NCBI GenBank assembly: GCA_010909165.1
Contig: VJWM01000197.1
Span: 124,001-188,000 of the forward strand
Source of the DNA: Anthoceros angustus
Taxonomy: Eukaryota > Plantae > Anthocerotophyta
Reading direction: 5' to 3'
Length of the DNA: 64,000 nucleotides
Each line of letters opens with the position of its first letter. The stretch's first letter is position 1. Positions 12,197 through 43,745 of the stretch are shown piece after piece. The notes under the pieces are model-generated. The model saw only the letters and a program-made list of their open reading frames with translations. It searched no databases and was not told where the DNA came from. Made by a program: the position numbers and the translations under genes.

Positions 12197-15100
12197 TCAA
12201 TGCCGATCACCACAGGAACAAGTGCCGTCCGAGAAACGGTGTACTCGGTGTGCGTCTCTAACAACGATCTCTCGCTTCTCAAGATGTGACATAATCTTGG
12301 TGCTGCTGTGACAGTCATTACACATGCGAAGATTCTTCGTGACTATCAAGGTTGTGCCATCAGGAGTGTTCAGGAGACCATATGCCAGCGCCAATTTCTC
12401 GGCATGTCCACACAAGGCATCTTCCTTCGCCTGCTCAGATACAGCCTTCAGTACCAAGCCCGTTTGCGGGACATGGCCACCTTCGTCTTTCAACCTCAGA
12501 TTCACGCTTTTGAGCTTTGAGGATATGTCAGCCCTCTCTTCTCCCACTCTGAACTCGTGCACCTCAGACTTGACTTCGATGCACGCCTTTGCAGGCTTCT
12601 TTCCAGCACTTGCTAATTTTCTCAAGCTTTCTATCCTGTCTACCTCGTCCCACCTCCCTGCCTCTGCGTAGATATTTGCTAGGAGCACATACGAGCTGGC
12701 ATTACTGGGTTCCAGTTGCACGAGACGGTCAAAACATCGCCTTCCACGCTCCATGTCAGCGTGGCTTCTGCACGCACTTAGCAACGACGTCCAGCCCACG
12801 GCATCATTTTCAGAACAGCTGGTTTGCAGCAGATCTTCAGCCTCATCCAAATGACCTGACCGTCCAAGAAGATCGACCATGCAATTATAGTGACACTCCG
12901 TGGGCAGAATCCGATAGTCCTCAACCATCATCCTGAAAAACTCCTGGCCCCTGTGCACCAAACCCGCATGACTACATGCGACCAGAAGGCAAATAAAGGT
13001 AGCACCATCCGGTTTGACACCTTGCAGACGCATTTCCGTGAAGAACTGCACGGCCATTTCACTGTCGCCATGCTCAGCGTAGCCATTAAGCAGGGAGTTC
13101 CATGTCACTACATCTCTAGTGGCTAATCTGTCAAACACTTCCCGAGCCTCTGCCAAACTTCCACATTTTGCGTACATGTCTACCAGGCTGCTGCCAACAG
13201 ATGCATCAGCTTCCAGGCCACTGGCACGAATCTGTGCATAAAGCTGCTTCCCCTGCTGCAAGGCTCCCATGGAGGCACATGTTTGAAGGAGACACACATA
13301 CGTAACACGATCAGCTGGAGTCATGGCCTCCCGTTGCATACTGGCATAGAGAGCCAGGGCTTGTCGACCAAGCCCTAGCTGAGTGTATCCTGCAATCATG
13401 GTAGTCCATGTTACCACATCTTTTGCAGTTAGACTGTCAAACACACTCTGAGCATCCTCTACACTTCCACACTTTAAGTACATATCCATCAGGCAGTTGC
13501 CAATAACTACGTCAGCTTGGAGCCCTCTTTGCTGGATTTGAGCATGAACTTGCTTCCCTTGCTCCAGAGCTCCTATGCTGGCACATGCTTGAAGGAGACA
13601 CACAAACGTGACATGACTGTCTAGCATCACGCCCTCCTGTTGCAAACTGGCAGCCAGAGCCAAGGCTTCTGACCCCAGGCCCTGCTGCGTATATCCAGCA
13701 ATCATGGCAGTGCATGCAACCGCATTCCTCATGGGCAGCAAGTCAAACACTCTGCGAGCAGCTTCCAGGCTTCCACATTTTGCATACATGTCCACCAGGC
13801 TGCTGCCAACTGCAAGATCGGCTTCTAGGCATCTTTCACGGATCTGTTGATGAAGCTGCTTTCCCTGAGACAGCGCTTTGATGCTGGCACATGCTTGAAG
13901 GAGACAGACAAATGTGACATGATCAGCTGGAGTGATGGCCTCCTTTAGCATGTTCTCGTACAGAGCCAGAGCTTCATGTCCCTTCCCCCGGTGGGAATAT
14001 CCTGCAATCATAACAGTCCATGACACCACATCTTTTGCTTGCAATGCGTCAAACACTCTGCGAGCATCCTCCAAGCTCCCGCATTTTGCATACATGTCCA
14101 CCAGGCAATTGCCCACTAGCACATCAGTTTCCAGCCCCCTTTCTTTTATCTGTTCATGAAGCTCCTTCCCATAATGAAGAGCTCCAACACTAGCACATGC
14201 CTTCAGGAGGCATGCAAACGTGACATCATCAGCTATAGACATGCCATCTTGTGGCATGCTTGCATACAGAGCCAGGGCTTCTTCACCAAGTCCATGCTGT
14301 GTATATCCTGCCATCATCGCATTCCAGGTTACCACATTTCTACTGGGCAAGCTGTCAAACACAGTGCGAGCATCTTCCAAGCTCTTGCATTTCGCATACA
14401 TGTCCAGCAGGCTGCTGCCTACAGACACATCAGCTTCTAGGCCCCTTTCACAGATGAGTGCATGGAGCTGCTTACCCTGACGCAACGCTGCAACACTAGC
14501 ACATGCTTTCAGCAGGCACACAAATGTAACGTGATCGGCCGGAGTCAATCCCTCTTGCTGCATAACTTCATAAAGATCCAGGGCCTGCTGACCGAGCCCA
14601 TTCTGAGCATATCCAGCTATCATGGCATTCCACGTCACCACAGATCTGGTCGGCAATGCGTCAAACACTTTTCGAGCATCCTCCAAACTTCTGCACTTGG
14701 CATACATGGTCACCAGGCTGCTATCAACGAAGACATCAGCTGCAACAGCACTCTCCAGAATATCACTATGAACCTCCTTCCCCGAGACCAAATCCCCTGC
14801 AGCAGCACAGGCCTTAAGAACTGCAACAAACACATGGTTGTCTGCCGTCACACCAGACTCCCGCATCTGTCGATACAGTTTAATAGCCTCCCTGGACTTC
14901 CCCTGTCGAGCATGCGCCAAAATAATCGTACCCCAAACGTAAACATCTGGGGCATTCACATCACCGAACACCTGCAACGCTTTCTCCAACTTCCCATGAC
15001 CAGCATACATACCAATGATGTGATTGGCCAAAAACACATCCCCCTCGTACCCAGCTCTCCGAGCAAGAGCATGAACACGCCTCCCAAGCCCCAAATCCTT

Positions 15101-15697
15101 CTGTGCCACACACTTCTTCAGCACACGATAAACAAGACCCCTCCCAACACTACGCCCTTCCTTCACCATAAACTCCAACCCTTCAACAGCCTCCCTCAGC
15201 TCCCGATCCTCACAACCATACCCGAAACCCCCTTCCACCAAAATTCGAGATTCCCCATTTCCTGCACTCGCAGACTCCTTCTCTGCATCCCACCTGGCCA
15301 GCTCCGAATCCACCCAGCCAGGCTTCCCATAGCCATTCAACCACAGAGCCTGGTCGTACGTCTTGTGCCTGAAGTCGGGATGGCGAGAACTCCTCTTCTC
15401 CAGCCTGTTGTCCCACCACTTTGCAGGATCCTGAAAGAAGAGCTGCCACAGAACATCCTGACTCTCCTTCTGCGCAACGCCATTGCTTGAGCGCGTCCTT
15501 CCAGCACAAGCTGGAGGTGGGTCGCATCCACCAATCTTGTGGGCCGAAGGCCTCCTCCCAAAGCCAAGCTGGTCATCTGCCTCCCTGTTGTAAGGGCAAT
15601 GTGCCTCCTTGAAATGCAATTCTTCGAAGGCACGTCCGCCATCGAGCCACCAAGCTTGCTTCCCTGAAACCACATTGCGTACGCAGGAAAGCTGCAT
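12197..15697 (-). CDS. PLS-class PPR protein with E domains and DYW:KP (KPAxA, DRH-type) deaminase domain and N-terminal OSB-type PDF motif; candidate organellar U-to-C RNA editing factor
   Basis: Intact intronless 1166-aa ORF with about 7 repeats of a ~102-aa PPR triplet (VVTWNAMIAGY...FVCLLKACAS...SSLVDMYAKCGSL). C-terminus KKPAKACIEV...HAEKLA...CNDCH...CSCGDRH. aa 83-130 LWQLFFQDPAKWWDNRLEKRSSRHPDFRHKTYDQALWL. Confidence 0.95.
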   Translation of the reverse strand: MQLSCVRNVVSGKQAWWLDGGRAFEELHFKEAHCPYNREADDQLGFGRRPSAHKIGGCDPPPACAGRTRSSNGVAQKESQDVLWQLFFQDPAKWWDNRLEKRSSRHPDFRHKTYDQALWLNGYGKPGWVDSELARWDAEKESASAGNGESRILVEGGFGYGCEDRELREAVEGLEFMVKEGRSVGRGLVYRVLKKCVAQKDLGLGRRVHALARRAGYEGDVFLANHIIGMYAGHGKLEKALQVFGDVNAPDVYVWGTIILAHARQGKSREAIKLYRQMRESGVTADNHVFVAVLKACAAAGDLVSGKEVHSDILESAVAADVFVDSSLVTMYAKCRSLEDARKVFDALPTRSVVTWNAMIAGYAQNGLGQQALDLYEVMQQEGLTPADHVTFVCLLKACASVAALRQGKQLHALICERGLEADVSVGSSLLDMYAKCKSLEDARTVFDSLPSRNVVTWNAMMAGYTQHGLGEEALALYASMPQDGMSIADDVTFACLLKACASVGALHYGKELHEQIKERGLETDVLVGNCLVDMYAKCGSLEDARRVFDALQAKDVVSWTVMIAGYSHRGKGHEALALYENMLKEAITPADHVTFVCLLQACASIKALSQGKQLHQQIRERCLEADLAVGSSLVDMYAKCGSLEAARRVFDLLPMRNAVACTAMIAGYTQQGLGSEALALAASLQQEGVMLDSHVTFVCLLQACASIGALEQGKQVHAQIQQRGLQADVVIGNCLMDMYLKCGSVEDAQSVFDSLTAKDVVTWTTMIAGYTQLGLGRQALALYASMQREAMTPADRVTYVCLLQTCASMGALQQGKQLYAQIRASGLEADASVGSSLVDMYAKCGSLAEAREVFDRLATRDVVTWNSLLNGYAEHGDSEMAVQFFTEMRLQGVKPDGATFICLLVACSHAGLVHRGQEFFRMMVEDYRILPTECHYNCMVDLLGRSGHLDEAEDLLQTSCSENDAVGWTSLLSACRSHADMERGRRCFDRLVQLEPSNASSYVLLANIYAEAGRWDEVDRIESLRKLASAGKKPAKACIEVKSEVHEFRVGEERADISSKLKSVNLRLKDEGGHVPQTGLVLKAVSEQAKEDALCGHAEKLALAYGLLNTPDGTTLIVTKNLRMCNDCHSSTKIMSHLEKREIVVRDAHRVHRFSDGTCSCGDRH

Positions 15698-15949
15698 CCG
15701 CAGGATTTGCTGTCTCCCCTTGCTCGGTTGGTCGATCTCTCAGATTCCTACACCCGAATAACCTTACTCAAAATTCCCCAGTTCTCAGCGAGGAATTTTC
15801 AACAAAGATAAAATAGAATCATTTAAACAAATATTAATTAAAAAATTGATGATTAAAATTCTAAAATAGATCAAGACAACTACATAGATACATATTAAAT
15901 CGGAGATGAGGTGAACCCATCTACTAAAAAGACATACAAGGGAACCTAT

Positions 15950-15975
15950 TATGGAATACCGATCTGGTCACACGG
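15950..15975 (+). repeat. Left TIR (26 bp)
   Basis: Exact reverse complement of 27810-27835. Confidence 0.97.
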
Positions 15976-16586
15976 GAGTGTGTGTGTGACATCCTTTTTT
16001 TTTCGGTGTACGCTACGAGAATATGCCATGGAATCTTTTAGATACTCACGTATAATACATGCCACATCAGCTTCACGAGGTTTCTACGCGGGGAAAAAAC
16101 ATTCTATCACACGTTCATCGGCTTGGTGTTCCGATGGTGTCATACAGATCTTTTCTTGTTAGTGGTTTTTAGGGTTTCCATCGGATCAGCACACATACAT
16201 GGGAAAGAGGCGGGCAACACATACATACAGGAACTTTTGTTTGCAAGTATGGCCCGCGTTTGCCGAGAAGCTGAATGCAAATCCTCCGCTTAGACAGGTT
16301 GCTTTCACTGTATGTGCAGGAAGGACAGGATGTGGGAGCATTCACTACGTTTCGGTGTGGTTCAATACTAACATGCTTCTGTTATGCTTGCAGTTGATGG
16401 CGGGGGAATGACGGAAGATGATAGTAATTTGAATCAGCATCCACTCACCTGGGCATCAACACCCTGTTCCTCATCGCATCATGCCTCGAGTGAGTGACCC
16501 TGCGTGTTTTAGGAGACGGGACATGTGAGGACGAACCCTAACGCTTTTTGTGCACTGAGCATATTAGGTGATGGTGCGGCGTGTAG

Positions 16587-16928
16587 CGTGTTGCACCTTT
16601 GTTTCACGTTTTTTGATTAGTCAGGCAGCCAGGACTGATTGAATGCAAGTGCCTTGCTTTGCAGGCACCTTCAGAAGGATTTCGCAAATAGGATGCTCAT
16701 ACAACCTCGGCAAATGAAGGAAATTCGACGCTCACACACACAACATCTTCAAGTGACACCGGTATTCATGCAGCTCCGTGTTGTTTCCTTACCGTGTTGC
16801 ACCTTTGTTTCTCGATTTTTGTACAATGTGGCAGCCAGGACTCACATTGTGCAAGGGTCTTGCTTTTCAGGCAACTTCAGAAGGATTTCGCCGACGTCAT
16901 GGTCATACAGGCTCGGCAACTGAAGGAA
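16587..16928 (+). repeat. ~140-bp direct repeat (period 206 bp) inside the transposon, each copy containing a splice-acceptor-like TTGCTTT(T/G)CAG
   Basis: CGTGTTGCACCTTTGTTTC...CTTCAGAAGGATTTCGC...TGAAGGAA at 16587-16722 and 16793-16928. Confidence 0.75.
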
Positions 16929-18479
16929 CCCAGTCTTGTGATGCACCATTCACTGCCTCAGACGGGAAAGGTGGCACCTGTGAATCTCAAGTGCAACGTC
17001 TGTTGGCGTCTGCGAAATTTTGCAAGTCACAATGATGTGCCTTGATAGTGATTACAGTGTAGTTGTGTCATTATGATTTAAAATCCCTAGAACTAGCCGT
17101 GGAACACAATCTTGAAGCAACAAAACAAACCGAAAAGCCAACACTTGTGCGCAGTAACTCATGCTTGCACAATTGCAGCCACAAAAACCACATGTTCAAG
17201 TTTGCACTCCCACCTCATGGTGGGAGGTCTCAAAACACCTACCTACAAAAAAGCCTACAACCTGCTCCGCTCAATCTGGAAAGAGTCGTAGAGCAGGGCC
17301 TCCATCCTCTTGTGCCCCGGTCAGTGGCCCCTCGCTTAGCTCGGTGGGCGCCTCGTGACTGAGGAGGAGCCCTGTGAGGAAGGCAAGGCAGGCCATGGCA
17401 TACCATGGCGCCGCTGCGCTGTGGAATTGGGGTGGAGGTGGAGCAAGCAGCATCCCATGAAATGGAAAGGCGGTGGGGAAAGGGAGAGGTGGGCGGGGCT
17501 AGCAGGAGGGGAGGGGTCTCGGGTGCGCTCCTTGAGACATGGATGCACATGCACTGCTGCGTTCATGATATCCATGAACGCCCGCACTCGGGCTTCCACA
17601 CACTGCATGTTAGGGGCACTTGGGGCATCCTCTCCATCATGCCTCCACCTCGATGCAGCGCAACCTAAGGTCGCGCACCTTGTCCACGACCTCCGTGGCC
17701 GGCGCCACTCATGGGCGCATCGATAGCAATCAATGATGATCGAGTGGTCGCCATAATGCCCGAAACTCACAGGCGCGGCTCTGGCCGCCTTGGGATGTGC
17801 CCCGTTCTTCTTGGTGCTCACTCCCGAGACAGGAGTTCGCACCTCGGCGTCGCCCCCTCCATCTTCCCCACAGCAACTTGCGCCCGGGGCTTGGGTTTGC
17901 GCCCGCCGTAGTTCACCCTCTTCTTCTTCCGCCCACAAACCCAGTGACCTCAGGCTCCACAATGAGCTCGGCCAACTCGCTCGAGTGGCCGCCTCCCTCA
18001 GCGCGATTCGCCTCCCAAACGACGCTCAATCTTGGTGGCGCTCACATGTGCAGTGCGGGGAAGTGCCATCCGAATCATAGATGATTCGGTGATGGCTGCT
18101 CAAATCACGCCTTCAAGACCGCAACCCCAACCCATCATGCGGCTATTAGCATTGTTGTCAATCCCATACGCGCAAAGCGCGCCTTTTGCCGGCGCGTGCG
18201 CCGGCGCACCCGGACGGGTGCACGCTTTTGCGTGCACGCGCGGACCGGTGCAGCGCGCTTGTGCGCTGTGGGTCTGGAACAACGGCGCGCACGGTGCGCT
18301 TACCTCGACTGCTGGAGCCCGATGCGCGCCTGAAGTCTGGCGCGACCGGCACATGAGGTGCCCCAGCACGTACTTATGCACGCCTTGGTGTCATCTAAAG
18401 CCCAACTGTAGATGTCTCTGGTTAATGTATCTGGTTGATGTATCTGGTTAATGGAGTCGTGGTTGTCTTTTTATTGCAG

Positions 18480-21400
18480 ACATTCGGGACTATGCTGGCG
18501 TTTCTCCAAAAGGAAATAGTTTTAGGGTTGATGATGACGAAGATGGCCGAACAAGCATGTGAAAGCGATCCTCTCCGGGAGAGCGATGGAGAGGCAAGGA
18601 AAAGGCAGTTCGCAACCACGACCAAAGCACCATCATCAGCAGCTCTGAATAGGGGCAATTTTGATGAGGATTCAATGGAACAAGAAACAGAGAGGTACTT
18701 GCAGCCAGCAGGTATAGATATCCTGGATGACGCTGATAGTGGAGAATATGAAGAGCATGAAACCGCAAATGAAGATGTTGAGGACGACGATGTGCATCAG
18801 ACAACCGACAGAGTTGAAGCCGATGACAACAACAGAGAGGATATACATAGCGAGGGGGCTCAAAACGTTGTCTAATGTCCCAAAGAATCGCCATGCATTG
18901 GAGGATGCCCAGCAGCTTCTACAAAGTCTGGACAGTAGGGTCAAAGAATCTGTGAAGGAGCGAGCCCGTGTACAACCAACCTCAAAGGAGGTAGACGCGG
19001 ATGTTCCAGTTTCACCTGCAAGGACTAAAGGTAAACCGAAAGCAGGGAAAAGAGGAAAGAGGAATGACATTGACGAGACACCAGCGACGGGACGCGTCAT
19101 CACCAAAGCTGTGCTAACGGACAACGACAGAGTAGAGCGAGCAGCATAAGGACCCGTTACATCAAATTCGAGAGTCAGCGCACAAAAAGAGGTGCATTCC
19201 GCATACAGATATGGTTGCCATCACCAAGTTGAGAAGCGCAGACTACATTACTCGTGACGCTCAGATCCGAAGAGTGGATGAATCGTGGGGAAAACATCTT
19301 CTCCGGGAAATTAAAAAGGGACCTGTGCAAGAGGGAGTACTTCCTCTGCTATGTATGATCGATCCAAGGGAGTGCGCAAGCGTGGAGGTCTTTGACAAAG
19401 ACAAGTTGAAAAGGCAGCAGTACACCATGGGAGTATTGGGTGGGAACCACAGCTTCTATGCGTTCCAACGCTGTCACGCGAAGACCGGAGAACTCACACT
19501 TCCAAAGATATGGAAGCTCATATATATCGAGCTTAACCTGTGCAGATGCGTGTCCGCCAGATCACAATGTCAAGGCAGATTTCCGGAAGAGAATGTCTTT
19601 CATTGAGCAAGTCCGCTATATTCACGATGAAATGAAAATTGCGGCTGAGGAGGGTATTAGCATTACAATGGATTGGAAGTACAATCTATATCGGATGCTA
19701 GGCGTCATCGGCGCGCGGATCGGGAAGAAATGCGACTTGTCGACGAGCTGCCGTTATGCATTGCTAGTGTCCCGCCTCATGTGTGGACACGGTGGACGAG
19801 GTTTTCGATCTTTGGGAGAGGGGTGAGCTTCCGAGCAAGGTAACCGAAGAAAGGCAGCAAGAGGGGAAATCAAAACGGGGTCTTGACATGAGCCGCGGGA
19901 TCCAAATTTGATTATAAAGCCAATGCATGCGACCAATTGGAGAGTTTTCCAGGGCATGCCTCCAGGGGAAGCAGGTGAAAGGATTATGTTGTCTGCGCTG
20001 GAGAAAGTGATTCAAGGCGAGTTGACCGTGAGCGGCATGAAAACGTGGATAACGAAGGCCAAGAAGTTGAATGTCATCCAGACAGCATTTTGCTCTGGAC
20101 TGAGGTGCAATTCATTTGCAGAAGTTGAGCGAGAATACCGAGGCACTCACACCGTAAGATATAGCGAAATTTCAACCGGTGTTTGATCACATTGTAAGTA
20201 CACATGTATTGTCCGCCGAGTTAGCAAGTCGCAAAACTAGTTTGCGCTCGTCTTCATGTTGCACCTATGAGCGTCTCCATCCTGTGCGGAACCTGAAAAA
20301 GAAGAGTACAAAGAGAAGATGATACCCGATAGCTTCAAAGAGCACATCAATGCGGCAAGAAATTGGAAGAGGGTGGAAGATTTGCGAGAGTGGCGAGAGG
20401 AAGACAACGACGCAAAACTAGACATTTTCCATGTTCAAAAGCAAGCAAAGGTCCGTTACGGTAATAGCGGTGATATTCGTGAAATGGCTGCCTACTTGGG
20501 GAAAAGAGAATACAAGTTGGTCGTCGATTTACCAAGGGGCAATTTATCGGAGACATGGGATAAGGAGATGACATGTGAGGATTTGGAGAAGATAATGGAT
20601 GGATTCATGACAATCACCGAATGCAAGACTTTCCGTGATATTCATGCATGGACGGACGGATCAGGGATGTCCAAATGCACCGCGAAAATGGTGTGAAAAG
20701 GGGGTTTATACAATGGTGCAGGAGAAAGACAACTTGGTTTGGACGAGGGACTTTACGAGAATCATGAGTACATGACGTGGGGTATGGTGTTCACCCAACG
20801 TTGAAGATATGAGGAAGTGCGTGCATTGTCCAATAGTGCGGTAGATTGGAGCAATGCTGCGTTTATTCGACATAGCGCGATCGTGAAGAAACTTTTGAAT
20901 GTGTCCAACGATGGCCATGTTGTTTCTCCTTACCAAAAGCCAATAGGGTTGATGGTCCTGCTATACGACCTATTCACAGAAAGAGGGGAATGGGTTATAG
21001 ATGGATGCTCGGAAAGCGGGAGTGGAATACTTGCGGCATTCTTGGAAGGCGGGCGTATTCTGTTGACCAAGAACAGAGGAGCACAATATTCATCGAACAG
21101 CGTATTACAGGCCATGAAGTGTTTCCTACAGACGAGGAAGAGTTGACCACCAAACCACACAAACGTGGACATCCGGTTTTGCCAAAGAGATGGCAGGGAG
21201 ATCAGTTAAGCCCAGGGCCGCAACGCTACACTTGGTTCAAGGAACATGCGCACCCATCGACCTTCAAGACTTGAGTCAATCACAGGGGCCCCAGAAGAAG
21301 AAGGAGAAAGATGGCAAAAAAGGTCCGGAAAACCCTAAGAACCCAGACGGGAAAGAAGTGCGAAGACCAGAAGAAAGCGACCCTACTTGGGACAACCAAC

Positions 21401-21540
21401 ATCTGGAGACGTTTGGCTTTGGCGAATCCCAAGGTGGAGAAACGCCATATCTTCCTCTTGCTATTTACGATCCGCAACGGCTGCAGGAGAACGATGACAT
21501 CGTCGTCCCGAGGACGGAAAGACAACATTCGCCAAACTAG
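18480..21540 (+). pseudogene. Transposon cargo gene: acidic N-terminal region, ParB-like domain, helical linker, beta-class N4C/N6A DNA methyltransferase domain, charged tail (frameshifted)
   Basis: Successive + strand fragments: YTMGVLGGNHSFYAF (GGNH 19439-19450), DHNVKADFRKRMSFIEQV, GDIREM..YKLVVDLPRG...TWDKE (motif IV-like, 20526-20540), SPYQKPIGLMVLLYDLFTERGEWVIDGCSESGSGILAA (motifs X and I, 20928-21026), GRRAYSVDQE..IEQRI. Order IV...X-I-II is that of beta-class MTases. Confidence 0.75.
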
Positions 21541-22299
21541 CTAGAAACATACACCGTTGTCATACATGTTGGAATTTAAATGTGAGTGCGCGCACAAGTT
21601 TGTGCACAAATAGCGTGGCGGTCGAAGGAAAAGGCGATCGTGAATGTCTCGGATGGTTTTCCTCGTAATTCGATGCACAATGTGACATATCGTGTATCGC
21701 AACAATAATTGAAATGTTTGGGGTGACATGTCGGAGAAATACCAAAAGGTCGATTCCAAAGGCGGATTGTGCGAAGGGGTCCGGAACGTCCGTGTACCAA
21801 AAGGGGGTTTCGGAGAAACCCTTCGCAATGCATTTATTCCTTGTGCACGCTAGATGGTGCCGACCTTGGGAGGATGACCAACGCGTGATTTTGTGCTGGG
21901 GAGGGGCGGGGAGGAAGCGGGTGGGGGTTGGGGTTTCGTAGTGGCCGCAGCGGGGTGATTTTCCGCCACGGTGGGGTGACGGGGTGGCGGAGCGGGTGGG
22001 GTCGGGGCTGCAGTGGCGCAGAATGGGGTGAGGCAAAGTTTTGCGGTTGTGGGAAAGGCAAGTTGGGTGCAGCGGTAGAGGGACGGCAACCGACAGGCGC
22101 TGGTGCGAGAGCTAGGATGAGGCCTGAATGGCCAGACGGCCCAACTGGCCGCCGAACCCGGCCACGAATCGGCAGCTTGAGTTGGAAGAAAAACGACGCG
22201 CGGCGACTCTTGAGCACGCAACCATGCGGTTGACGCGCTACCACCGAAAAGATGCAGAACGACTCTACCGCGCCTAAACCCTCCACGCCTGCACCAAGG

Positions 22300-23083
22300 T
22301 TTGCAGACTCCGAGACCGGAGTGGACGATGAGGAACCCGCAATCACTTGCAGGTATGAGTGGCAGCGGCCATCCAAGGTAGGTTGTCCGAGTGCAGGTGG
22401 GTGCGGCTGCACCATCCACGGGGAGGTTCATGTGCTTTGGACGCGCTGCACCGACGTGCATTACCTTGCAGGAAGGTGCAATGACGGTCGCGGGCTTCGG
22501 TTGTGTGCAGACCGGGCGTCTCGCACAGCCACGGGTGGCAACGACCTCAAGCGGGCCGTGGGGAAGATAGGTGGGAGATGCAATGCCCTCGAGAGTACAT
22601 CGCTGGGTGGCCCATGGTTCCCATCAACTATAGGGAGCTCTCCGAGTTTTTGGACTTTGTTGAGGACCATCAGAGCCAATGCCTTCGTATGGAGGGGTAT
22701 CCAGAGAGACTTGCAGTCCTATACCACCTGCACCGGCGGGGGACAAATGGGATGGAGTGGCGGTGGACAAATTACTGCGAGAGCGCTTACCGTCTGGTGG
22801 AGTGCCATGTTTTCATGCATCGTATTTGTGATTGTACAAAGCCGGAATGGAAGGTGTCTGTGGAGCGACCACAAGCGATGGATGACCTGCGGTTTGGTTC
22901 GCCAATTATGCTGTGAGCCACCATGACTTGGTGGAAAGATGGCCCAGGAGGTTCTACGAGTTGGTGGATTTCGTGCGATATGCGGAGCTCAATTGGAATG
23001 AGAAGACCGCCGCGCTGTTCGATGAGATTAACCTGCAGACGAAAGCCCATGTGGTGGCATATTTGGCAGACGTGCACGCTTGA
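22300..23083 (+). pseudogene. Transposon cargo ORF of unknown function (frameshifted or spliced)
   Basis: ORF 22503-22916 (WPMVPINYRELSEFLDFVEDH...) continues in another frame as HDLVERWPRRFYELVDFVRYAELNWNEKTAALFDEINLQTKAHVVAYLADVHA*; protein-like composition. Confidence 0.4.
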
Positions 23084-23775
23084 GGCGAGGAGCAGTCGGA
23101 GCCCAACGCCTGCAAGGCATGCACAGACTCATAGTGATGGGTGCAACTGCAGAGGGCATGCAGCTGCAGAGGAGCATTTCCCGGCCTGCCCTGCAGCCGC
23201 ACCTACTGTGCCACATGTACGTGCCATTCGCGGTTTGGCACTGAGTTGTGTTCGGTGCAAATTGTATGTAGATGAGAAGAACGCCTGCCGGGTGTTAGGG
23301 GTTAGGTGTGCGACGAGAGTTGCAGCACATGGCGATTGTAAGCCGGCACGGCATGTGCGATGTCGTTTTCAGTAATATGCTTTCTGCCCACAATGTTGTC
23401 GAGGCGGTCGCAGACACCGCAAGTTATCGCCTTTGCTGTTGTGACCAACTCCCGATTGGCTGCATCGCCGCAACATCGCAGCCGACTGCATGCGGTTGCA
23501 ATGTACTAGGGAGACCACCAGTGAGCGTGGCCTTTTACCAAGGCGGATTCGGTCTGAAATAATGCGGTCAGAAGCCCTCCGAAAATTACAAGGCCATCGC
23601 TGCACATTTGTTTCCGTGTACATTGAATGACTGCCTTGATGGCGCCCCACCCAGCCCATGAGGGAGGGGCTGGTGGTGCAGCTCAAGCAACAGCGGTGGG
23701 CGGGATGTCATGGACGCTTGGGGCAGGGGATGCTGTTAACGCGCCAAAGAGCTCGCATGGCATGTTGCTGTTGTT

Positions 23776-24357
23776 GTGGATGCCATTAGGAAGGACACAC
23801 GCCTGCGAGCTGCATGCCTAACAATTGAGATAGGGACGCCTGCAGTGACAATGCTGTGCCAGAAGGAAATGGGTGCTTATGTGTGGGATTTCTCAGTCAC
23901 TGAAAAGGAAGCCCTTTACCCATCGCACCGTCTGTCTCATGCAAACGAAAGCATGTTGGAAGGCACCTTGTGGGTTGCGATTGCGAAAGTGATGGAGGGC
24001 AAAGTCCTGCAGTCGGCGAAGTGGGCATGGAAGGTAGTCGAGAGGACGGTGGGGCCGCAGTGGGATCGTCGGCACCTGTGCTTGTGGACTGGGCCTGAGA
24101 GGGCATTGCACCTCGCAGTGGACATTGAGTGCCGGCCGGTGCCATTATGCATCGTGCACAGGGATGTGGATCGCCACAACTTCTTTGTGGGCCGCCACAC
24201 ACTCCCATTTGTGTACAACAGGACGGAGCATTTCATCTGCTACATGGACTTTTCGACCAACGAAGAGGGAGTGTTCCAAGTACTGGAGGTATGTGACCTC
24301 ATCATCAGGGCATGCCACACCATGGGTGGGCGCAAAGGGCACGCGTTGATTGCTTGA
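23776..24357 (+). CDS. 193-aa transposon cargo ORF, unknown function (weak resemblance to Ulp1-like peptidase)
   Basis: Open frame with globular composition. LPFVYNRTEHFICYMDF and a downstream frameshifted QG-CSFHVL loosely recall the His and Cys motifs of C48 peptidases. Confidence 0.35.
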   Translation: MDAIRKDTRLRAACLTIEIGTPAVTMLCQKEMGAYVWDFSVTEKEALYPSHRLSHANESMLEGTLWVAIAKVMEGKVLQSAKWAWKVVERTVGPQWDRRHLCLWTGPERALHLAVDIECRPVPLCIVHRDVDRHNFFVGRHTLPFVYNRTEHFICYMDFSTNEEGVFQVLEVCDLIIRACHTMGGRKGHALIA

Positions 24358-24899
24358 AGATCACATGCTTTCATGTTTGCGCCCTTGTGACTTCTGGACC
24401 CTGGGTTGAGGTAAAGCGTGATTACATCGTTTCGAGTTTTGCCAAGCGGCGGCCGAAGGCTATTGAGGGGAAGGACCAAGGCGTTGCAGCTTCCATGTGC
24501 TTACATATGAGGAATGAGCATGAGTGGCCATGTTTGTGTTGTGATGCTCTCGGAGGCCCATAGTGGCCTGTATAGTAATATGCAGATGTGTGTTGTGTGC
24601 GAGTTGGTGTGGAATGCTCGCAGCTTGTCTACAGTGCAAGAGTGTTTGCACTGCAGACAAGCTGCAAGCATGGTGACCAAAGGAGACCTCACACGGCCGC
24701 GTGCGCTTGCAGCCACGAATCCGCAACACGCAGAGAGGCGCCGCAACATGGTGGTGTGCGTCAGTACCCGCGATCGTGATAACCACCATGCCGGCGCGTG
24801 CGGCCTTCAATCGAAAGCCGCAGAGGCCTGAGCAGGCAGACGACAACCACGCGAACGCCTTCCACGCTAGTGGTGTGCGAGGTGTGCAAGCCACCTTGG

Positions 24900-26330
24900 C
24901 CATCCACAAGGCAGAAGCGCGCCTGTGGAGGAGGCCGATGGCAGCGGCGGGTGGCTCACCCGAATGGCAGGCGGATGATGGGTGGCTTGGGGGCACGCAC
25001 GGGCTGCACCAGGAGGATTGGACCAACGGGGAGGAAGGGCTGCAGGATGAGCAGTGGATGCACTTAGCAGAGGGGAAGAGGCGGCGCAAGGGGAGATGAG
25101 GCGAGGAAGGGGAGGAGGAGGCCGCGTGGTGGAGGCTTCGAGCGCTCACGCCCGAGCGGTGTCACGGCCGGCGGTGCGGCACTTGCAATCGTGGCGGCCC
25201 AGAAAGAGGCTGCCGTGAACTTCCGCTGAGGAATGATGGCCGGCTCCATGCGGCACCCGGAATGGCGCGGCGTGTATGGGAGGCTATCCGTGGTGAGTGC
25301 TGCTCGCACGCTCATGCCCATCACGCAGGCGTCAACGCAGAATACGCCGTTGCACGCAAGTCGATGGAATCGACATCCCAAGGAGGTGTGACATGGTTGA
25401 TCTGACCGGAGGACATGGCCCGCGCGATCCGCATCCGCAGCGTGCGATACACCAACAGCGCCCATGTTCATGTGGCACATGGATTGTGAGTGGTTCCAGT
25501 TTACGCGGTGTGTCTTGTCGCTAGATTGGAATGGGAGCGATTCTTTGCGATTGTCACAAATGGATGTGGTTGGATTGTGTGCGACTATGACAAGGCGTAC
25601 CAATTCTACTTGAGTCCATGGTGCAATAGATGGGGCCACCACTCGTCCCATGGTTGGTCTTTGGAAGATAACAAGCGGGGGACAACCATTTTCAACGCCT
25701 ATGTGGATGCAATGAGGAGGTTTGGCCATCCCAGTGATTCGCCTGACTATGCAAGCACAACAACAGATTAGGAGGATCGAGGCCAAGGGCACACGGCAGC
25801 AACTTCATCTGTGGCCCCTCCGTGCACAACCAGGTCAGACTGTGGTTGCTTGCGATGCCTTTGTCAACGAGGAGGTATGGTGCAGGGTAGTAATTGCAGC
25901 CTTTCTGTAGAGGATTGAGCATTTTTGGCGGTCATTGGGGGTGAAGTGGGCGTTCCTGTACGAGGGGTACATGATGGATTTGGTGAGGAGTAGCGAATTG
26001 GACATCACCAACCCCTAGCACATCCATTCCCTGCATGTCACCTTCATGCCCACCATGAGGGCGGAGCTGGAGCGTTGGAGGCAGGTGTGGAACAAGCACA
26101 GGGTGCGCAGGATAAGGGCCGCGGACAGGGACATCCCCGGCCATGTTGCTTGCAATAGCGTTCCAGGAAGAGGCTCGGCTCCAAGGGCGGGTGCAGCCAC
26201 CCGCATATGGGACTGCGGATGACGATGGCGAGGAGTTCGATGCCTGTGGTCCTTAGTATGCACAGAACGTGGCCCCCGAGATGCCACCGCTAGGTGTGAT
26301 TGAGCTGTTGTCCGGGGTGAGTCTTGGTGC
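24900..26330 (+). pseudogene. IS3EU-type DDE transposase (IS3/IS481-like integrase core) with introns
   Basis: APMFMWHMD (D 25482), YDK, VHGAIDG (25614-25634), DNKRGTTIFNAYVDAMRRFGHPS..DY (D 25745) and GSNFICGPSVHNQ. Removing the GT-AG intron 25834-25910 joins this to RIEHFWR (E 25917), followed by LDITNP*HIHSLHVTFMPTMRAELERWRQVWNKHRVR. 5' boundary approximate. Confidence 0.85.
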
Positions 26331-26340
26331 AAAGCACACT

Positions 26341-27124
26341 TGTCTTTGTCGCTAGATTGGAATGGGAGCGATTCTTTGCGGTTGTCACAAATGGATGTGG
26401 TTGGATTGTGTGCGACTATGACAAGCTGTACCAATTCTACTTGAGTCCATGGTGCAATAGATGGGGCCACCACTCGTCCCATGGTTGGTCTTTGGAAGAT
26501 AACAAGCGGGGACAACCATTTTCAACGCCTATGTGGATGCAATGAGGAGGTTTGGCCATCCCAGTGATTCGGTGGACTATGCGGTGAGCACAACGATAGG
26601 CGGACTGGGAGCGATGCGAGGCCAAGGGCACACGGCAGCAACTAATCCATGCCCCTCCGTTACTGTGGTCGTTGTGGTTGCTTGCGATGCCTTTGTCGGA
26701 GGAGGTATGGTGCGGGGTAATAGCTGCGGCTGTCTGCGAGGATTGAGCATTTTGGCGGTCATTGGGGAGAAGTGGGCGTTCAGCAAGGGTACATGATGGA
26801 TTTGGTGAGGAGTAGCGAATTGGACATCACCAACCCACAGCACATCCATTCCACACATGTCACCTTCATGCCCACCATGAGGAGCGTTGGAGGCGGTGTG
26901 GAACAAGCACTGGTCGCAGGATAAGGGAGCATGACGAGACATCCCGCCATGTTGCTTGCAATAGCGTTCGAGGCTCGGCTCCAAGGCGGGTCGACCACCC
27001 GCATATGGGGCGGATGGCGATGGCGAGGAGTTCGATGCTGTGGTCCTTAGTGACGTGGCCCAAGATGCCACCGCTAGGTGTGATTGTTGTCTGGTGAGTC
27101 TTGGCTGCCCGCACACTTGTCTTT
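26341..27124 (+). repeat. Tandem second copy of the 3' half of the transposase gene (copy of 25511-26340)
   Basis: TGTCTT(T)GTCGCTAGATTGGAATGGGAGCG restarts at 26341 and both copies end GCACACTTGTCTTT; they differ by many small indels. Confidence 0.9.
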
Positions 27125-27809
27125 AATGTGTGTAGGTTGTACCGCTTCTCATGTAAGGTTCCATCCCTTTAGCACATTTGCTAAACGAATGTGTACGCTT
27201 GTCTGGGTGAACCGCATGTCGCGAGGACAATGCCTATGCAAAGGGCTTGGAGGGCATGGACTTCCTCCCGATATGTACCGCTTTGCACAGCGACATTGTG
27301 CGGGGAGTGCGAGGCGAGGCACGCCGAGTACCTCCAGCGTGGGCCGGCAGGCGGGCGTGGCGTGGGCGGGGATCACTCTGCTGCTCGTAGTCCGATGCAG
27401 TCATGGCCCGATGCCAAGCTGCAGTCTTGCACGCAAGGGCAAACGCACTAAGCCGCATTGCAAATAGAGACGATGATTGTAGCGCAAACGCCATTGCACA
27501 GCGTAAGCGCAGCGCTAACGCAACCGCTGGCAACCCTTACACCTTGTGGATGCCGTGGTCGCAGACATGGTATGTTGCATGCCGCAATGGCGCGGCGACG
27601 CAAATGACCGCAACGCAACCCTAACCCCAAAAGAAGAAAAGTTTCTGTGTGTCGTGGAATCATTTTGTGTATCATGTGGTAGGTTGACCACATTGGGACA
27701 CTGGGGGGCCGCAACCTGGCAGATGTGGTCATGCATGACATGCCGAAATAGTTCCCCAGATGCGGCGGGACTATTTCTTTCTGTCCATAACCCTAAAAAA
27801 ATGTGGATG

Positions 27810-27835
27810 CCGTGTGACCAGATCGGTATTCCATA
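27810..27835 (-). repeat. Right TIR (26 bp)
   Basis: CCGTGTGACCAGATCGGTATTCCATA followed by TSD ACCTAT. Confidence 0.97.
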
Positions 27836-27841
27836 ACCTAT

Positions 27842-28685
27842 AGCGTACCCATCTAATCAAAGAAGTTCAGGAGAAAGAAGTTTTGGTGACTTGTTTTTTT
27901 TTTCTTTGTGTGGAGCTCGTGCGCGACCTGGCTCGATACAAGCCGGAACGTGAGCTGATTCTTGGGAATGCCTGCCGAGTAAGGCTTGGACCCAATAGCG
28001 TTTGGCGAGAGGGTTACGTAAGGCTTGGACCCAAGAGCGCCTGGCGGGAGGGGTAAGGCTTGGGCCCAAGAGCACCTGGCGAGAGGGGTAAGGCTTGGAC
28101 CTAAGAGCGCCTGGCGAGAGGGTAAGGCTTGGACCCAAGAACGCCTAGCAAGAGCAAAGATGGGACTCCGAAGGATAGAGCTCAATGCGTGGCCAACGGC
28201 CATGCGCAACTGTAACCTATGTAGGGAATTTAGCGAGTCGTCAAAAATAGCTATTGTGCTGGACACGACACATCCACTGACTTGTTGTTTTTGTGTGTTG
28301 GGGTGTCTGTGTTGCCCAAGCGACCGGTGAAGGCGAAACCGTAGTGAGTGGCGTTCAAGAAGGGAGCAACGTCAAGAAGGGAGCAACGTCAGTGGCCTAG
28401 ACGTGACGACCAATCAGGCCTGGCCAAGCCGTCAGGAGCCTAGCCCCCCACAGCCGATTAGGCTTGGCCAGGCCGTCATTGGCCTAGCCGCAATGACCAG
28501 TAAGTGGCCTAGCCGCAATGGCCTCAACACGGTGGCCTCAGAGCTTCATCGGCTCCGTTACGGTTAGGTGAAGGTAGACTTGCATCCGGGGGCGCCCGCG
28601 TCACCTCTACACAAAATTAAAAAAAGTCACAAGAAATTTCCCTAAACTTGTGGCTGCGGAGAACGGTATGCCATAGGAACCTAAG
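27842..28685. mobile_element. Older non-autonomous element with long imperfect inverted ends and an internal ~35-bp minisatellite (27979-28152)
   Basis: AAGTTCAGG..TTTTGGTGACTTGTTTTT..TTTGTGTGGAG mirrors CTCTACACAAAA..AAAAGTCACAAGAAATTTCCCTAAACTT. About five copies of GTAAGGCTTGGACCCAAGAGCGCCTGGCGAGAGGG. Confidence 0.45.
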
Positions 28686-29616
28686 GATCACAGTAAAGAG
28701 TTGCTAAACAACTACCTAGGTACATACCTATTTTGAGACCTATGTCATATATATATATATATCTATCTATATATATATAACTAACTTTAGGGTTGATGGG
28801 ACTAAATGCAAGCTAGATATGTATACGATGCAAGTGGACACAAGCTTTTCGTCTCATTACTTAATTTACGATCAATTTTGTAATTAGAAAATTAGTAATA
28901 TAATTAAATTAAAAATTAAATTCAAATAATATAATTGACGGTAACTTGTAACCGATGGTTCTCTTATCTCGAGTACAGTGTTGCCATGCAACTTTCTCCT
29001 GTCGGATTTGTCGGCCTCGCGCGACAAGCATAACCGCCACCGAGGCAGCTGCAGGTGAGCAACGACTGGCCTTCAACTGGCTGAGCCGCCATTCCAAATC
29101 CTCTGGCGTTGCAGGACTTATAACCCGGTTGCCTTCCCACTCCCACAAACGGCATGGTTCTCGATTGACGCGCCAACCAGCCACCGATGCGAGTGCTTGT
29201 CGGACTCAGGGACAGGTTCGCACCCAAGTGATTGGCCGTGCGGCTCCCGATTCAGAAATTGGCATGAAACACGTCTCCTGACAAGCTAGGAGCTTGGAGG
29301 TCCGGTTTTGGAGATTCTTGGCAGGAGTCGGCGTTCCTCTTGGGGAAGGAGAGTGCAGGATCGTGTGGGCGAAGGCAGGTTTTGTGAGTGATTGACTGAG
29401 GTGCGAGCGATTGCGGGACGGTAGCCACATTTGTCAACAATGTGCCTCCTGTCTGCAACTCGACATGATCTGGAGGAGGTCTGGGAGATCTAGAATTACG
29501 AGTGGAGTGTCGGATCGCGGAAGCCCTGGGAGTGCAAACTTGTACAATAGTGTAGGAGAGGACGGTGCTAGAATTAGAAAAAATCTTGTCTGGCAGCCTC
29601 AGCAGCTTAGGACGCT

Positions 29617-40659: not shown

Positions 40660-43745
<3,086 letters not shown>

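Follow-up and report, generated by a model that had tools for sequence, protein, structure and literature searches.

GingerRoot transposons were described in 2019 from Selaginella lepidophylla, in which 77 intact copies of 3.9-12.9 kb were found, and matching reads turned up in bryophytes and lycophytes too (Cerbin et al. 2019, PMC6839031). They group with the IS3EU transposons in one lineage at 99% bootstrap (Kojima and Bao 2023, PMC10045372); the ends of IS3EU families are TA..TA and their target-site duplications (TSDs) usually 6 bp long, and GingerRoots have 6-bp TSDs and mostly TA..TA termini (PMC10045372). Fungal IS3EU families end in TAYGG..CCRTA and possess terminal inverted repeats (TIRs) of more than 30 bp (Kojima 2025, PMC12730594), and the TIRs of S. 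lepidophylla GingerRoots measure 100-150 bp (PMC6839031). Cargo is known from both: 22 of the 77 GingerRoots hold gene fragments that they picked up (PMC6839031), and fungal IS3EU elements carry the gene of a TET/JBP dioxygenase, which hops between superfamilies, as well as an alpha-kinase gene (PMC12730594). In algae, the transposon Sola1-1_Ec32 of Ectocarpus encodes a 1104-aa accessory protein with a ParB-like part and an N4C/N6A methyltransferase, and accessory genes of this ParB-methyltransferase kind are found on several superfamilies of transposons (PMC12477816). The methyltransferase class from phage 'ParB-terminase' loci was described by Iyer et al. (PMC4738411), and a different ParB-fused methyltransferase family occurs in chlorophytes and chytrid fungi (PMC4738411). 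In the literature that we searched, transposon-borne ParB-methyltransferase genes came from algae only, with none from land plants. Here we analyse a transposon in a 64-kb stretch of DNA (hereafter the window) from the land plant Anthoceros angustus, namely positions 124,001 to 188,000 of contig VJWM01000197.1. With a probability of about 0.68, we read it as a decayed, non-autonomous GingerRoot/IS3EU element that was moved in trans and that carries a broken, captured passenger gene of the ParB-like/methyltransferase kind. The coordinates of its features are collected in Table 1.

Termini, size and superfamily

The longest inverted repeat in 15000-29000 of the window pairs 15949-15975 with 27810-27836 over 27 nt at 100% complementarity, and its symmetric reading gives a 26-bp TIR, TATGGAATACCGATCTGGTCACACGG. 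The element so delimited spans 15950 (TATGG…) to 27835 (…CCATA), or 11,886 bp, and the hexamer ACCTAT stands outside both ends. When the 26-mer was searched at up to three mismatches, only these two sites were found in the window, and 100 shuffles gave an expected count of 0.00. An earlier reading of this DNA made from its letters alone (the sequence-only reading) had proposed perfect 26-bp TIRs and a perfect 6-bp TSD, and both are borne out. The likeness of the two element ends stops after ~26 bp, and the TIR, perfect over 26-27 bp, is below both of the published ranges given above for fungal IS3EU and S. lepidophylla GingerRoots. The termini (TATGG..CCATA) and the 6-bp TSD (ACCTAT on both sides) are those of IS3EU and GingerRoot elements, and together with the intron-bearing, integrase-like DDE gene described below they support the proposal that this is a cut-and-paste element of IS3EU type.

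The flanks also bear on the idea that each TIR belongs to a different element, or that the whole is a composite, so that the 11.9 kb never moved as one unit. The interior is indeed a mosaic of a high-copy gene, open pieces without assigned function and a duplicated transposase core; however, a random 6-bp match has a chance of ~1 in 4096, only a joint insertion of both ends would be expected to leave identical 6-bp flanks, and the two TIRs are identical over 26 bp, all of which makes this alternative very improbable. An empty site, if present, would read GGGAACCTAT joined directly to AGCGTACCC. Self-comparison found no sequence in common between the element and the rest of the window, and an Rfam search of 15-29 kb returned no match.

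In two respects the element is less unusual than the sequence-only reading had held. It had taken the locus for a plant lineage of IS3EU, a superfamily that it placed mainly in animals and fungi, yet GingerRoot has been known from S. lepidophylla and bryophytes since 2019 (PMC6839031, PMC10045372); with lycophytes and bryophytes both among its recorded hosts, an IS3EU lineage in plants is no novelty. Likewise, it had considered the size to be far above the usual, but 11.9 kb falls within the published GingerRoot range of 3.9-12.9 kb. The Anthoceros element agrees with the S. lepidophylla GingerRoots in its 6-bp TSD, its TA..TA termini, its size, its land-plant host and a tendency to carry foreign gene pieces, and differs from them in that its TIR is 26 bp long, its transposase core is tandemly duplicated and broken, and its cargo is a nearly whole ParB-like/methyltransferase gene, in contrast to the host gene fragments of 84-1654 bp that are carried there. 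With fungal IS3EU (PMC12730594) it has in common the TAYGG..CCRTA termini, the 6-bp TSD, TIRs that are short (more than 30 bp in the fungi) and a DNA-modification gene that is also found on other transposon superfamilies, although in the fungal hosts the cargo is a demethylation-type dioxygenase and an alpha-kinase, whereas in the plant it is methyltransferase-like.

The transposase gene and its decay

Transposases of the IS3EU/GingerRoot superfamily have neither an HHCC zinc finger nor a GPY motif flanking the core, which sets them apart from the integrases of Ginger1 and Gypsy. Near the right end, at 25525-27093, lies an integrase-like transposase gene of IS3EU type. The DDE transposase that had been predicted there is therefore present, but it is duplicated, frameshifted and broken by stop codons. 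A Pfam scan that took in ~45 stop-free pieces of both strands gave a single relevant match, a stretch of 31 residues of PF24764 (rva_4, integrase core) against 26019-26219 (E 5.6e-5 and 23.4 bits, for a cut-off of 26 bits). We compared the three-frame reading of 25530-26130 with the published alignment of IS3EU/GingerRoot transposases (PMC10045372, Data S3 and Figure S1), and found in tandem copy 1, in order, WIVCDYDK.., VHGAIDGATTR, NKRGTTIFNAYVDAMRRFGHP, GPSVHNQ and RIEHFWRS..FMPTMRAELERWRQVWNKH. Set side by side, the copy 1 blocks WIVCDYDKAYQFYLS, VHGAIDGATTR, NKRGTTIFNAYVDAMRRFGHPS, NFICGPSVHNQ and RIEHFWRS correspond to LWHMDSYDKLAVYGFRFHGIIDGATR, then NKRPVTIFNNYARAVKKYGHPY, then AFLKGPSTHNQRIEHQWRD in the S. 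lepidophylla GingerRoot SL_GR-020 (PMC10045372), the common patterns being DxYDK..HGxIDGAT, NKRxxTIFNxY..GHP and GPSxHNQRIEH. Over three motif blocks 36 of 75 positions are identical to SL_GR-020, versus 24 of 75 to the animal element IS3EU-1_SK. The conserved HNQ|RIE motif, which carries the catalytic glutamate, is split by an intron, and its removal joins ..GPSVHNQ to RIEHFW.. and restores the frame, as in SL_GR-020 ..GPSTHNQRIEHQW; the spliceosomal intron that had been proposed is thus well supported, as a 77-nt GT..AG intron whose excision restores HNQRIE. A second candidate, a 38-nt 'intron' at 25734-25771 that would link two frames, was rejected as too short for a plant intron.

The blocks of copy 1 are spread over three frames, with at least three frameshifts that are not introns, as there is no room for introns between them. 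Moreover, TAG stops stand at 25769-25771 and 26016-26018, and a cysteine occupies the aligned column of the first catalytic aspartate, so that the element has no open transposase frame with intact D, D and E, as an autonomous element would. Copy 2 is without the SVHNQ motif and without either splice site of the 77-nt intron. The two copies are 88.7% identical over ungapped columns (Jukes-Cantor distance 0.12), and are separated by 21 gap runs, most of them not multiples of three. At their junction (26317-26355, 25486-25524) the 5' part of one intron (GTGAGTCTTGG…) is fused to the 3' part of another (…TGTCGCTAG), and these two introns have a TGTCTT microhomology in common, which suggests unequal exchange between two of the transposase gene's introns as the source of the tandem duplication.

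If the two copies had diverged at this site after insertion, the TIRs and TSDs (64 nt) should have gained ~3.9 changes, and the probability of finding none is ~0.02. We infer that the element had lost its function before this insertion and was mobilised in trans by transposase made elsewhere, by an intact relative. The claim of a young insertion is plausible, but not as the work of the element's own transposase, which is broken. In the sequence of events that we envisage, an intact relative at another place in the genome would have supplied a transposase that bound at the TIRs and excised the element, and re-insertion by a 6-bp staggered cut would have produced the duplication of ACCTAT, the element's own transposase having been tandemly duplicated and frameshifted by the time of the move. 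The passenger gene (~18.6-21.5 kb) most likely entered by capture or as an old, truncated nested insertion.

The passenger gene

The single frame 20271-21146 aligns over its full length with two phage beta-class DNA methyltransferases of ~250 aa. The three characteristic blocks of these enzymes have their counterparts here: CDLPYGT…WD of the phages is matched by VDLPRGN…WD, HPTQKP by SPYQKP (20925-20942) and DNCMGSGTT by DGCSESGSG (motif I, 21000-21026). With motif IV (DLPRG, 20526-20540) upstream of the S-adenosylmethionine-binding motif I, the order is the circularly permuted one and is colinear with the phage enzymes. A local hidden Markov model built from three phage enzymes and run against all 1298 open pieces of the window matched 20805-21143 at E 2e-9, while the N-terminal half of the domain, with motif IV, was not significant alone in that search. 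A methyltransferase family of PHROG matched at E 1.4e-6. In a tblastn search 119 phage records were found (best E 3e-4, identity ~30-38%), and among the 15 listed 11 are annotated as methylase or methyltransferase; in an Atlas feature search PF01555 alone appeared in 95 of 100 hits, with a score of 0.95. Pfam gave no match to the region even at E <= 5, a PDB sequence search with two methyltransferase pieces gave nothing meaningful, and a word-indexed protein search with 20271-20693 found no relatives.

These results bear out the presence of a methyltransferase-like gene, the C-terminal half with its E of 2e-9 above all, but the gene is broken. Two in-frame stops (20694-20696 and 20802-20804) interrupt the methyltransferase domain, a frameshift lies further upstream (see below), and the catalytic motif, (D/N/S)-P/L-P-(Y/F/W) with an aromatic last residue, here reads D-L-P-R. 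In this copy the passenger gene cannot make a working enzyme, and the view that the element mobilises an epigenetic writer is not upheld. The most abundant contig variant in DNA run X1 of the same organism also reads ADLPR, which indicates that the aromatic residue was lost family-wide and not by private decay of this copy, and a role as 'epigenetic writer' is doubtful for the wider family of the passenger as well. No RNA run is listed with the passenger gene, and the single RNA run of the same sample placed nothing on 18300-24200.

Compared with the phage beta-class methyltransferases of Lactococcus phage 66901 and Klebsiella phage BUCT556A, the plant domain has the same placement of motif IV before motif I, the DLPYG..WD-type motif IV and the HPTQKP and DxxxGSG blocks that follow it; those enzymes, however, are intact, stand-alone proteins of ~250 aa, whereas the plant copy is interrupted, follows another domain to which it is fused, and has R at the position of the aromatic residue. 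The two closest phage relatives (loci L004 and L006) are encoded directly next to terminase genes, both the small and the large, and have DLPYG, not DPPY, as motif IV. A prokaryote-type amino-methyltransferase is known from another land plant, in the form of the N4-cytosine methyltransferases MpDN4MT1a/b, which occur in Marchantia sperm (bioRxiv 10.1101/2021.02.12.428880) and differ in having a TSPPY catalytic motif and in being expressed host genes.

Upstream of the methyltransferase lies a second domain, for which 'ParB-like' is a candidate label drawn from Atlas features and from the literature on ParB-methyltransferase fusion; the marks of a ParB/Srx-like N-terminal domain would be the ParB N-terminal fold and a conserved arginine-rich box. 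By tblastn its relative P0001 gave two colinear high-scoring segment pairs in different frames (combined E 9e-19), which places a frameshift between 19498 and 19563. The piece shares an invariant GGNH signature with three database proteins, and a HMMER search of 1.8 billion representatives returned only 4 hits. Their context was of no use; two belong to a single Logan sample and another to a metagenome scaffold of 795 bp. Clear sequence relatives of the piece are confined to Logan sample SRR33208241. In the Atlas, ParB_N clusters appear only from rank 20 (score 0.92), and the clusters nearest to 19136-19603 are hypothetical proteins of Cnidaria and DUF3723 proteins of Ascomycota (score 0.97). 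The family may represent a domain of eukaryotic mobile elements more broadly. No match to the piece was found in Pfam, PHROG or NCBIfam, nor in phages by tblastn; a metagenome scan with the ParB-like alignment gave 133 pattern matches, of which 0 were confirmed; a word-indexed protein search with the ParB-like region of a relative locus (L002) found no relatives; and two AlphaFold2 models had a pLDDT of 46-47, too poor for a fold search.

We mapped the Logan contigs of run X1 on 18300-24200. Between 18573 and 21473 fall 161 contigs with a summed word depth of up to 344, and with identities from more than 99% to less than 90% and many differing indels, whereas 21846-24200, which follows the ~3-kb gene on its right, has zero depth. 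Contigs on the passenger gene only, and none on the adjoining 2.4 kb, point to a separate, heterogeneous, multi-copy repeat family, from which the gene was probably captured. The GC content is 45-49% in the passenger (19-21 kb) and 55-58% in 22-27 kb. A search for an internal TIR pair or TSD around the methyltransferase gene found none that was convincing, and an intact nested Sola1 copy as the source of the passenger was rejected on that ground.

The same observations bear on another view, that the ParB-like/methyltransferase gene is a selected, regular accessory of the GingerRoot family, present in most of its full-length members, which decayed only in this copy. Its product would bind to the DNA of the element itself and mark it, a role that has been proposed for algal transposons. 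The gene does lie inside the TIRs, on the strand of the transposase and without TIRs of its own; algal ParB-methyltransferase accessory genes are carried by several superfamilies, and in fungal IS3EU the TET/JBP gene is another DNA-modification gene that moves between superfamilies. This view must nevertheless contend with the contig depth that stops at the gene, with a GC content unlike that of the rest of the element and with the abundant family variant that has DLPR in place of DLPY, and we consider it unlikely. Still rather unlikely is its more specific form, in which a land-plant GingerRoot/IS3EU lineage took the gene from Sola1-type transposons as regular cargo. By its published description, Sola1-1_Ec32 is likewise a large DNA transposon with a two-part gene in which the ParB-like part precedes the beta-class amino-methyltransferase; it belongs, however, to the Sola1 superfamily, and its gene is opposite to the transposase and presumed intact, whereas the Anthoceros passenger is co-oriented with the transposase, broken, and has DLPR at the catalytic motif.

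Between the passenger and the transposase are three putative coding pieces, none with a Pfam match. For the last of them (23740-24354) a word-indexed protein search found no homologue and a PDB sequence search nothing meaningful. This 205-aa open piece contains HRDVDRHN, followed 25 residues on by DFS, and so resembles the catalytic loop and DFG of a kinase; with an Atlas score of only 0.45 and no profile or homologue, the kinase reading was dropped. A palindrome sits between these pieces and the transposase (Table 1).

Table 1. Positions of the element's parts in the window
Feature	Position	Strand	Basis or remark
Left TSD copy, ACCTAT, 6 bp	15944-15949	.	Identical to 27836-27841
Left TIR, 26 bp, starts TATGG	15950-15975	+	Perfect complement of 27810-27835
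Two subterminal direct repeats, 139 nt each, 79% identical	16584-16722 and 16790-16928	.	Repeat search
Passenger stretch matching a multi-copy repeat family of the same organism	18573-21473	+	Contig depth
N-terminal passenger domain with GGNHS signature (candidate 'ParB-like')	19136-19709	+	tblastn of P0001, HMMER, Atlas
Beta-class (N6A/N4C-type) DNA methyltransferase-like domain	20469-21146	+	Phage enzyme alignment, profile, PHROG, tblastn, Atlas
Open reading pieces, putative coding	22485-22913, 22917-23372, 23740-24354 (within 22485-24354)	+	Reading of open frames
Near-perfect palindrome, 26-nt arms, 92% complementary, 6-nt loop	24614-24671	.	Inverted-repeat search
Transposase core, tandem copy 1	25525-26316	+	Three-frame reading against SL_GR-020/IS3EU alignment; Pfam rva_4
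Spliceosomal intron, 77 nt, GT..AG, pyrimidine tract before TAG	25834-25910	+	Motif continuity
Transposase core, tandem copy 2, more decayed	26356-27093	+	Alignment of the two copies
Right TIR, 26 bp, ends CCATA	27810-27835	-	Perfect complement of left TIR
Right TSD copy, ACCTAT, 6 bp	27836-27841	.	Identical to 15944-15949

Host setting and meaning of the insertion

To the left of the element, an intact open frame of 1166 aa on the minus strand (12197-15697) encodes PPR repeats, an E motif and a DYW deaminase domain; the protein is of the PLS class, and is a land-plant-type RNA-editing factor. Its start codon is 247 bp from the insertion, so that the element occupies the upstream region of this gene. 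That the nearest annotated relatives of the methyltransferase half are phage enzymes, encoded beside terminase genes, might call to mind bacterial or phage contamination, prokaryotic DNA acquired recently by horizontal transfer, or a chimeric assembly. The plant flanks are continuous, however, the transposase has a canonical spliceosomal intron and matches a eukaryotic family, and identity to the phage enzymes is only ~30-38%, which leaves any such origin very improbable. Bacterial contamination in particular is excluded by the intact PPR-E-DYW gene in the adjacent plant nuclear DNA and by the GT..AG intron; the sequence-only reading had likewise argued against it, from the TSD, the continuous flanks and the intron. 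On the right-hand side, a tandem array of ~5 units of 35 nt (85% matches, 27979-28154) lies 140 bp from the insertion site. Further along the window, 42001-43000 is an extremely AT-rich kilobase (13.7% GC) within a 7-kb low-GC stretch at ~41-48 kb, outside of which the GC content is 40-60%.

Some points weigh against our account of a decayed element moved in trans with a captured passenger. No other copy, empty site or intact relative with the same TIRs was seen, and the mobilisation in trans is what we infer from the state of the transposase. Moreover, the contig depth covers 18300-24200 only, and the zero depth to the right of the passenger comes from one low-coverage run kept as contigs. 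The assignment to GingerRoot is drawn from motif blocks, termini and TSD rather than from a tree, and the TIR of 26 bp contrasts with the 100-150 bp of the S. lepidophylla elements. Lastly, some of the apparent breaks in the passenger could be short introns that went unrecognised.

Taken together, this locus contributes one well-delimited and datable GingerRoot insertion to what is known of the superfamily in plants, where it has been studied little, and indicates that GingerRoot-type elements can pick up a nearly whole gene of another transposon family. The pairing of a GingerRoot/IS3EU element with a ParB-like/methyltransferase gene may be new. If it should prove recurrent, transposon-borne ParB-methyltransferase genes would extend to a new superfamily, and it would bear on whether ParB-methyltransferase proteins really mark transposon DNA, a question raised by the loss of the aromatic catalytic residue in the passenger family. 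If the gene were in fact regular cargo, it would be a self-marking gene that hops between plant transposon superfamilies, as the TET/JBP gene does in fungi.

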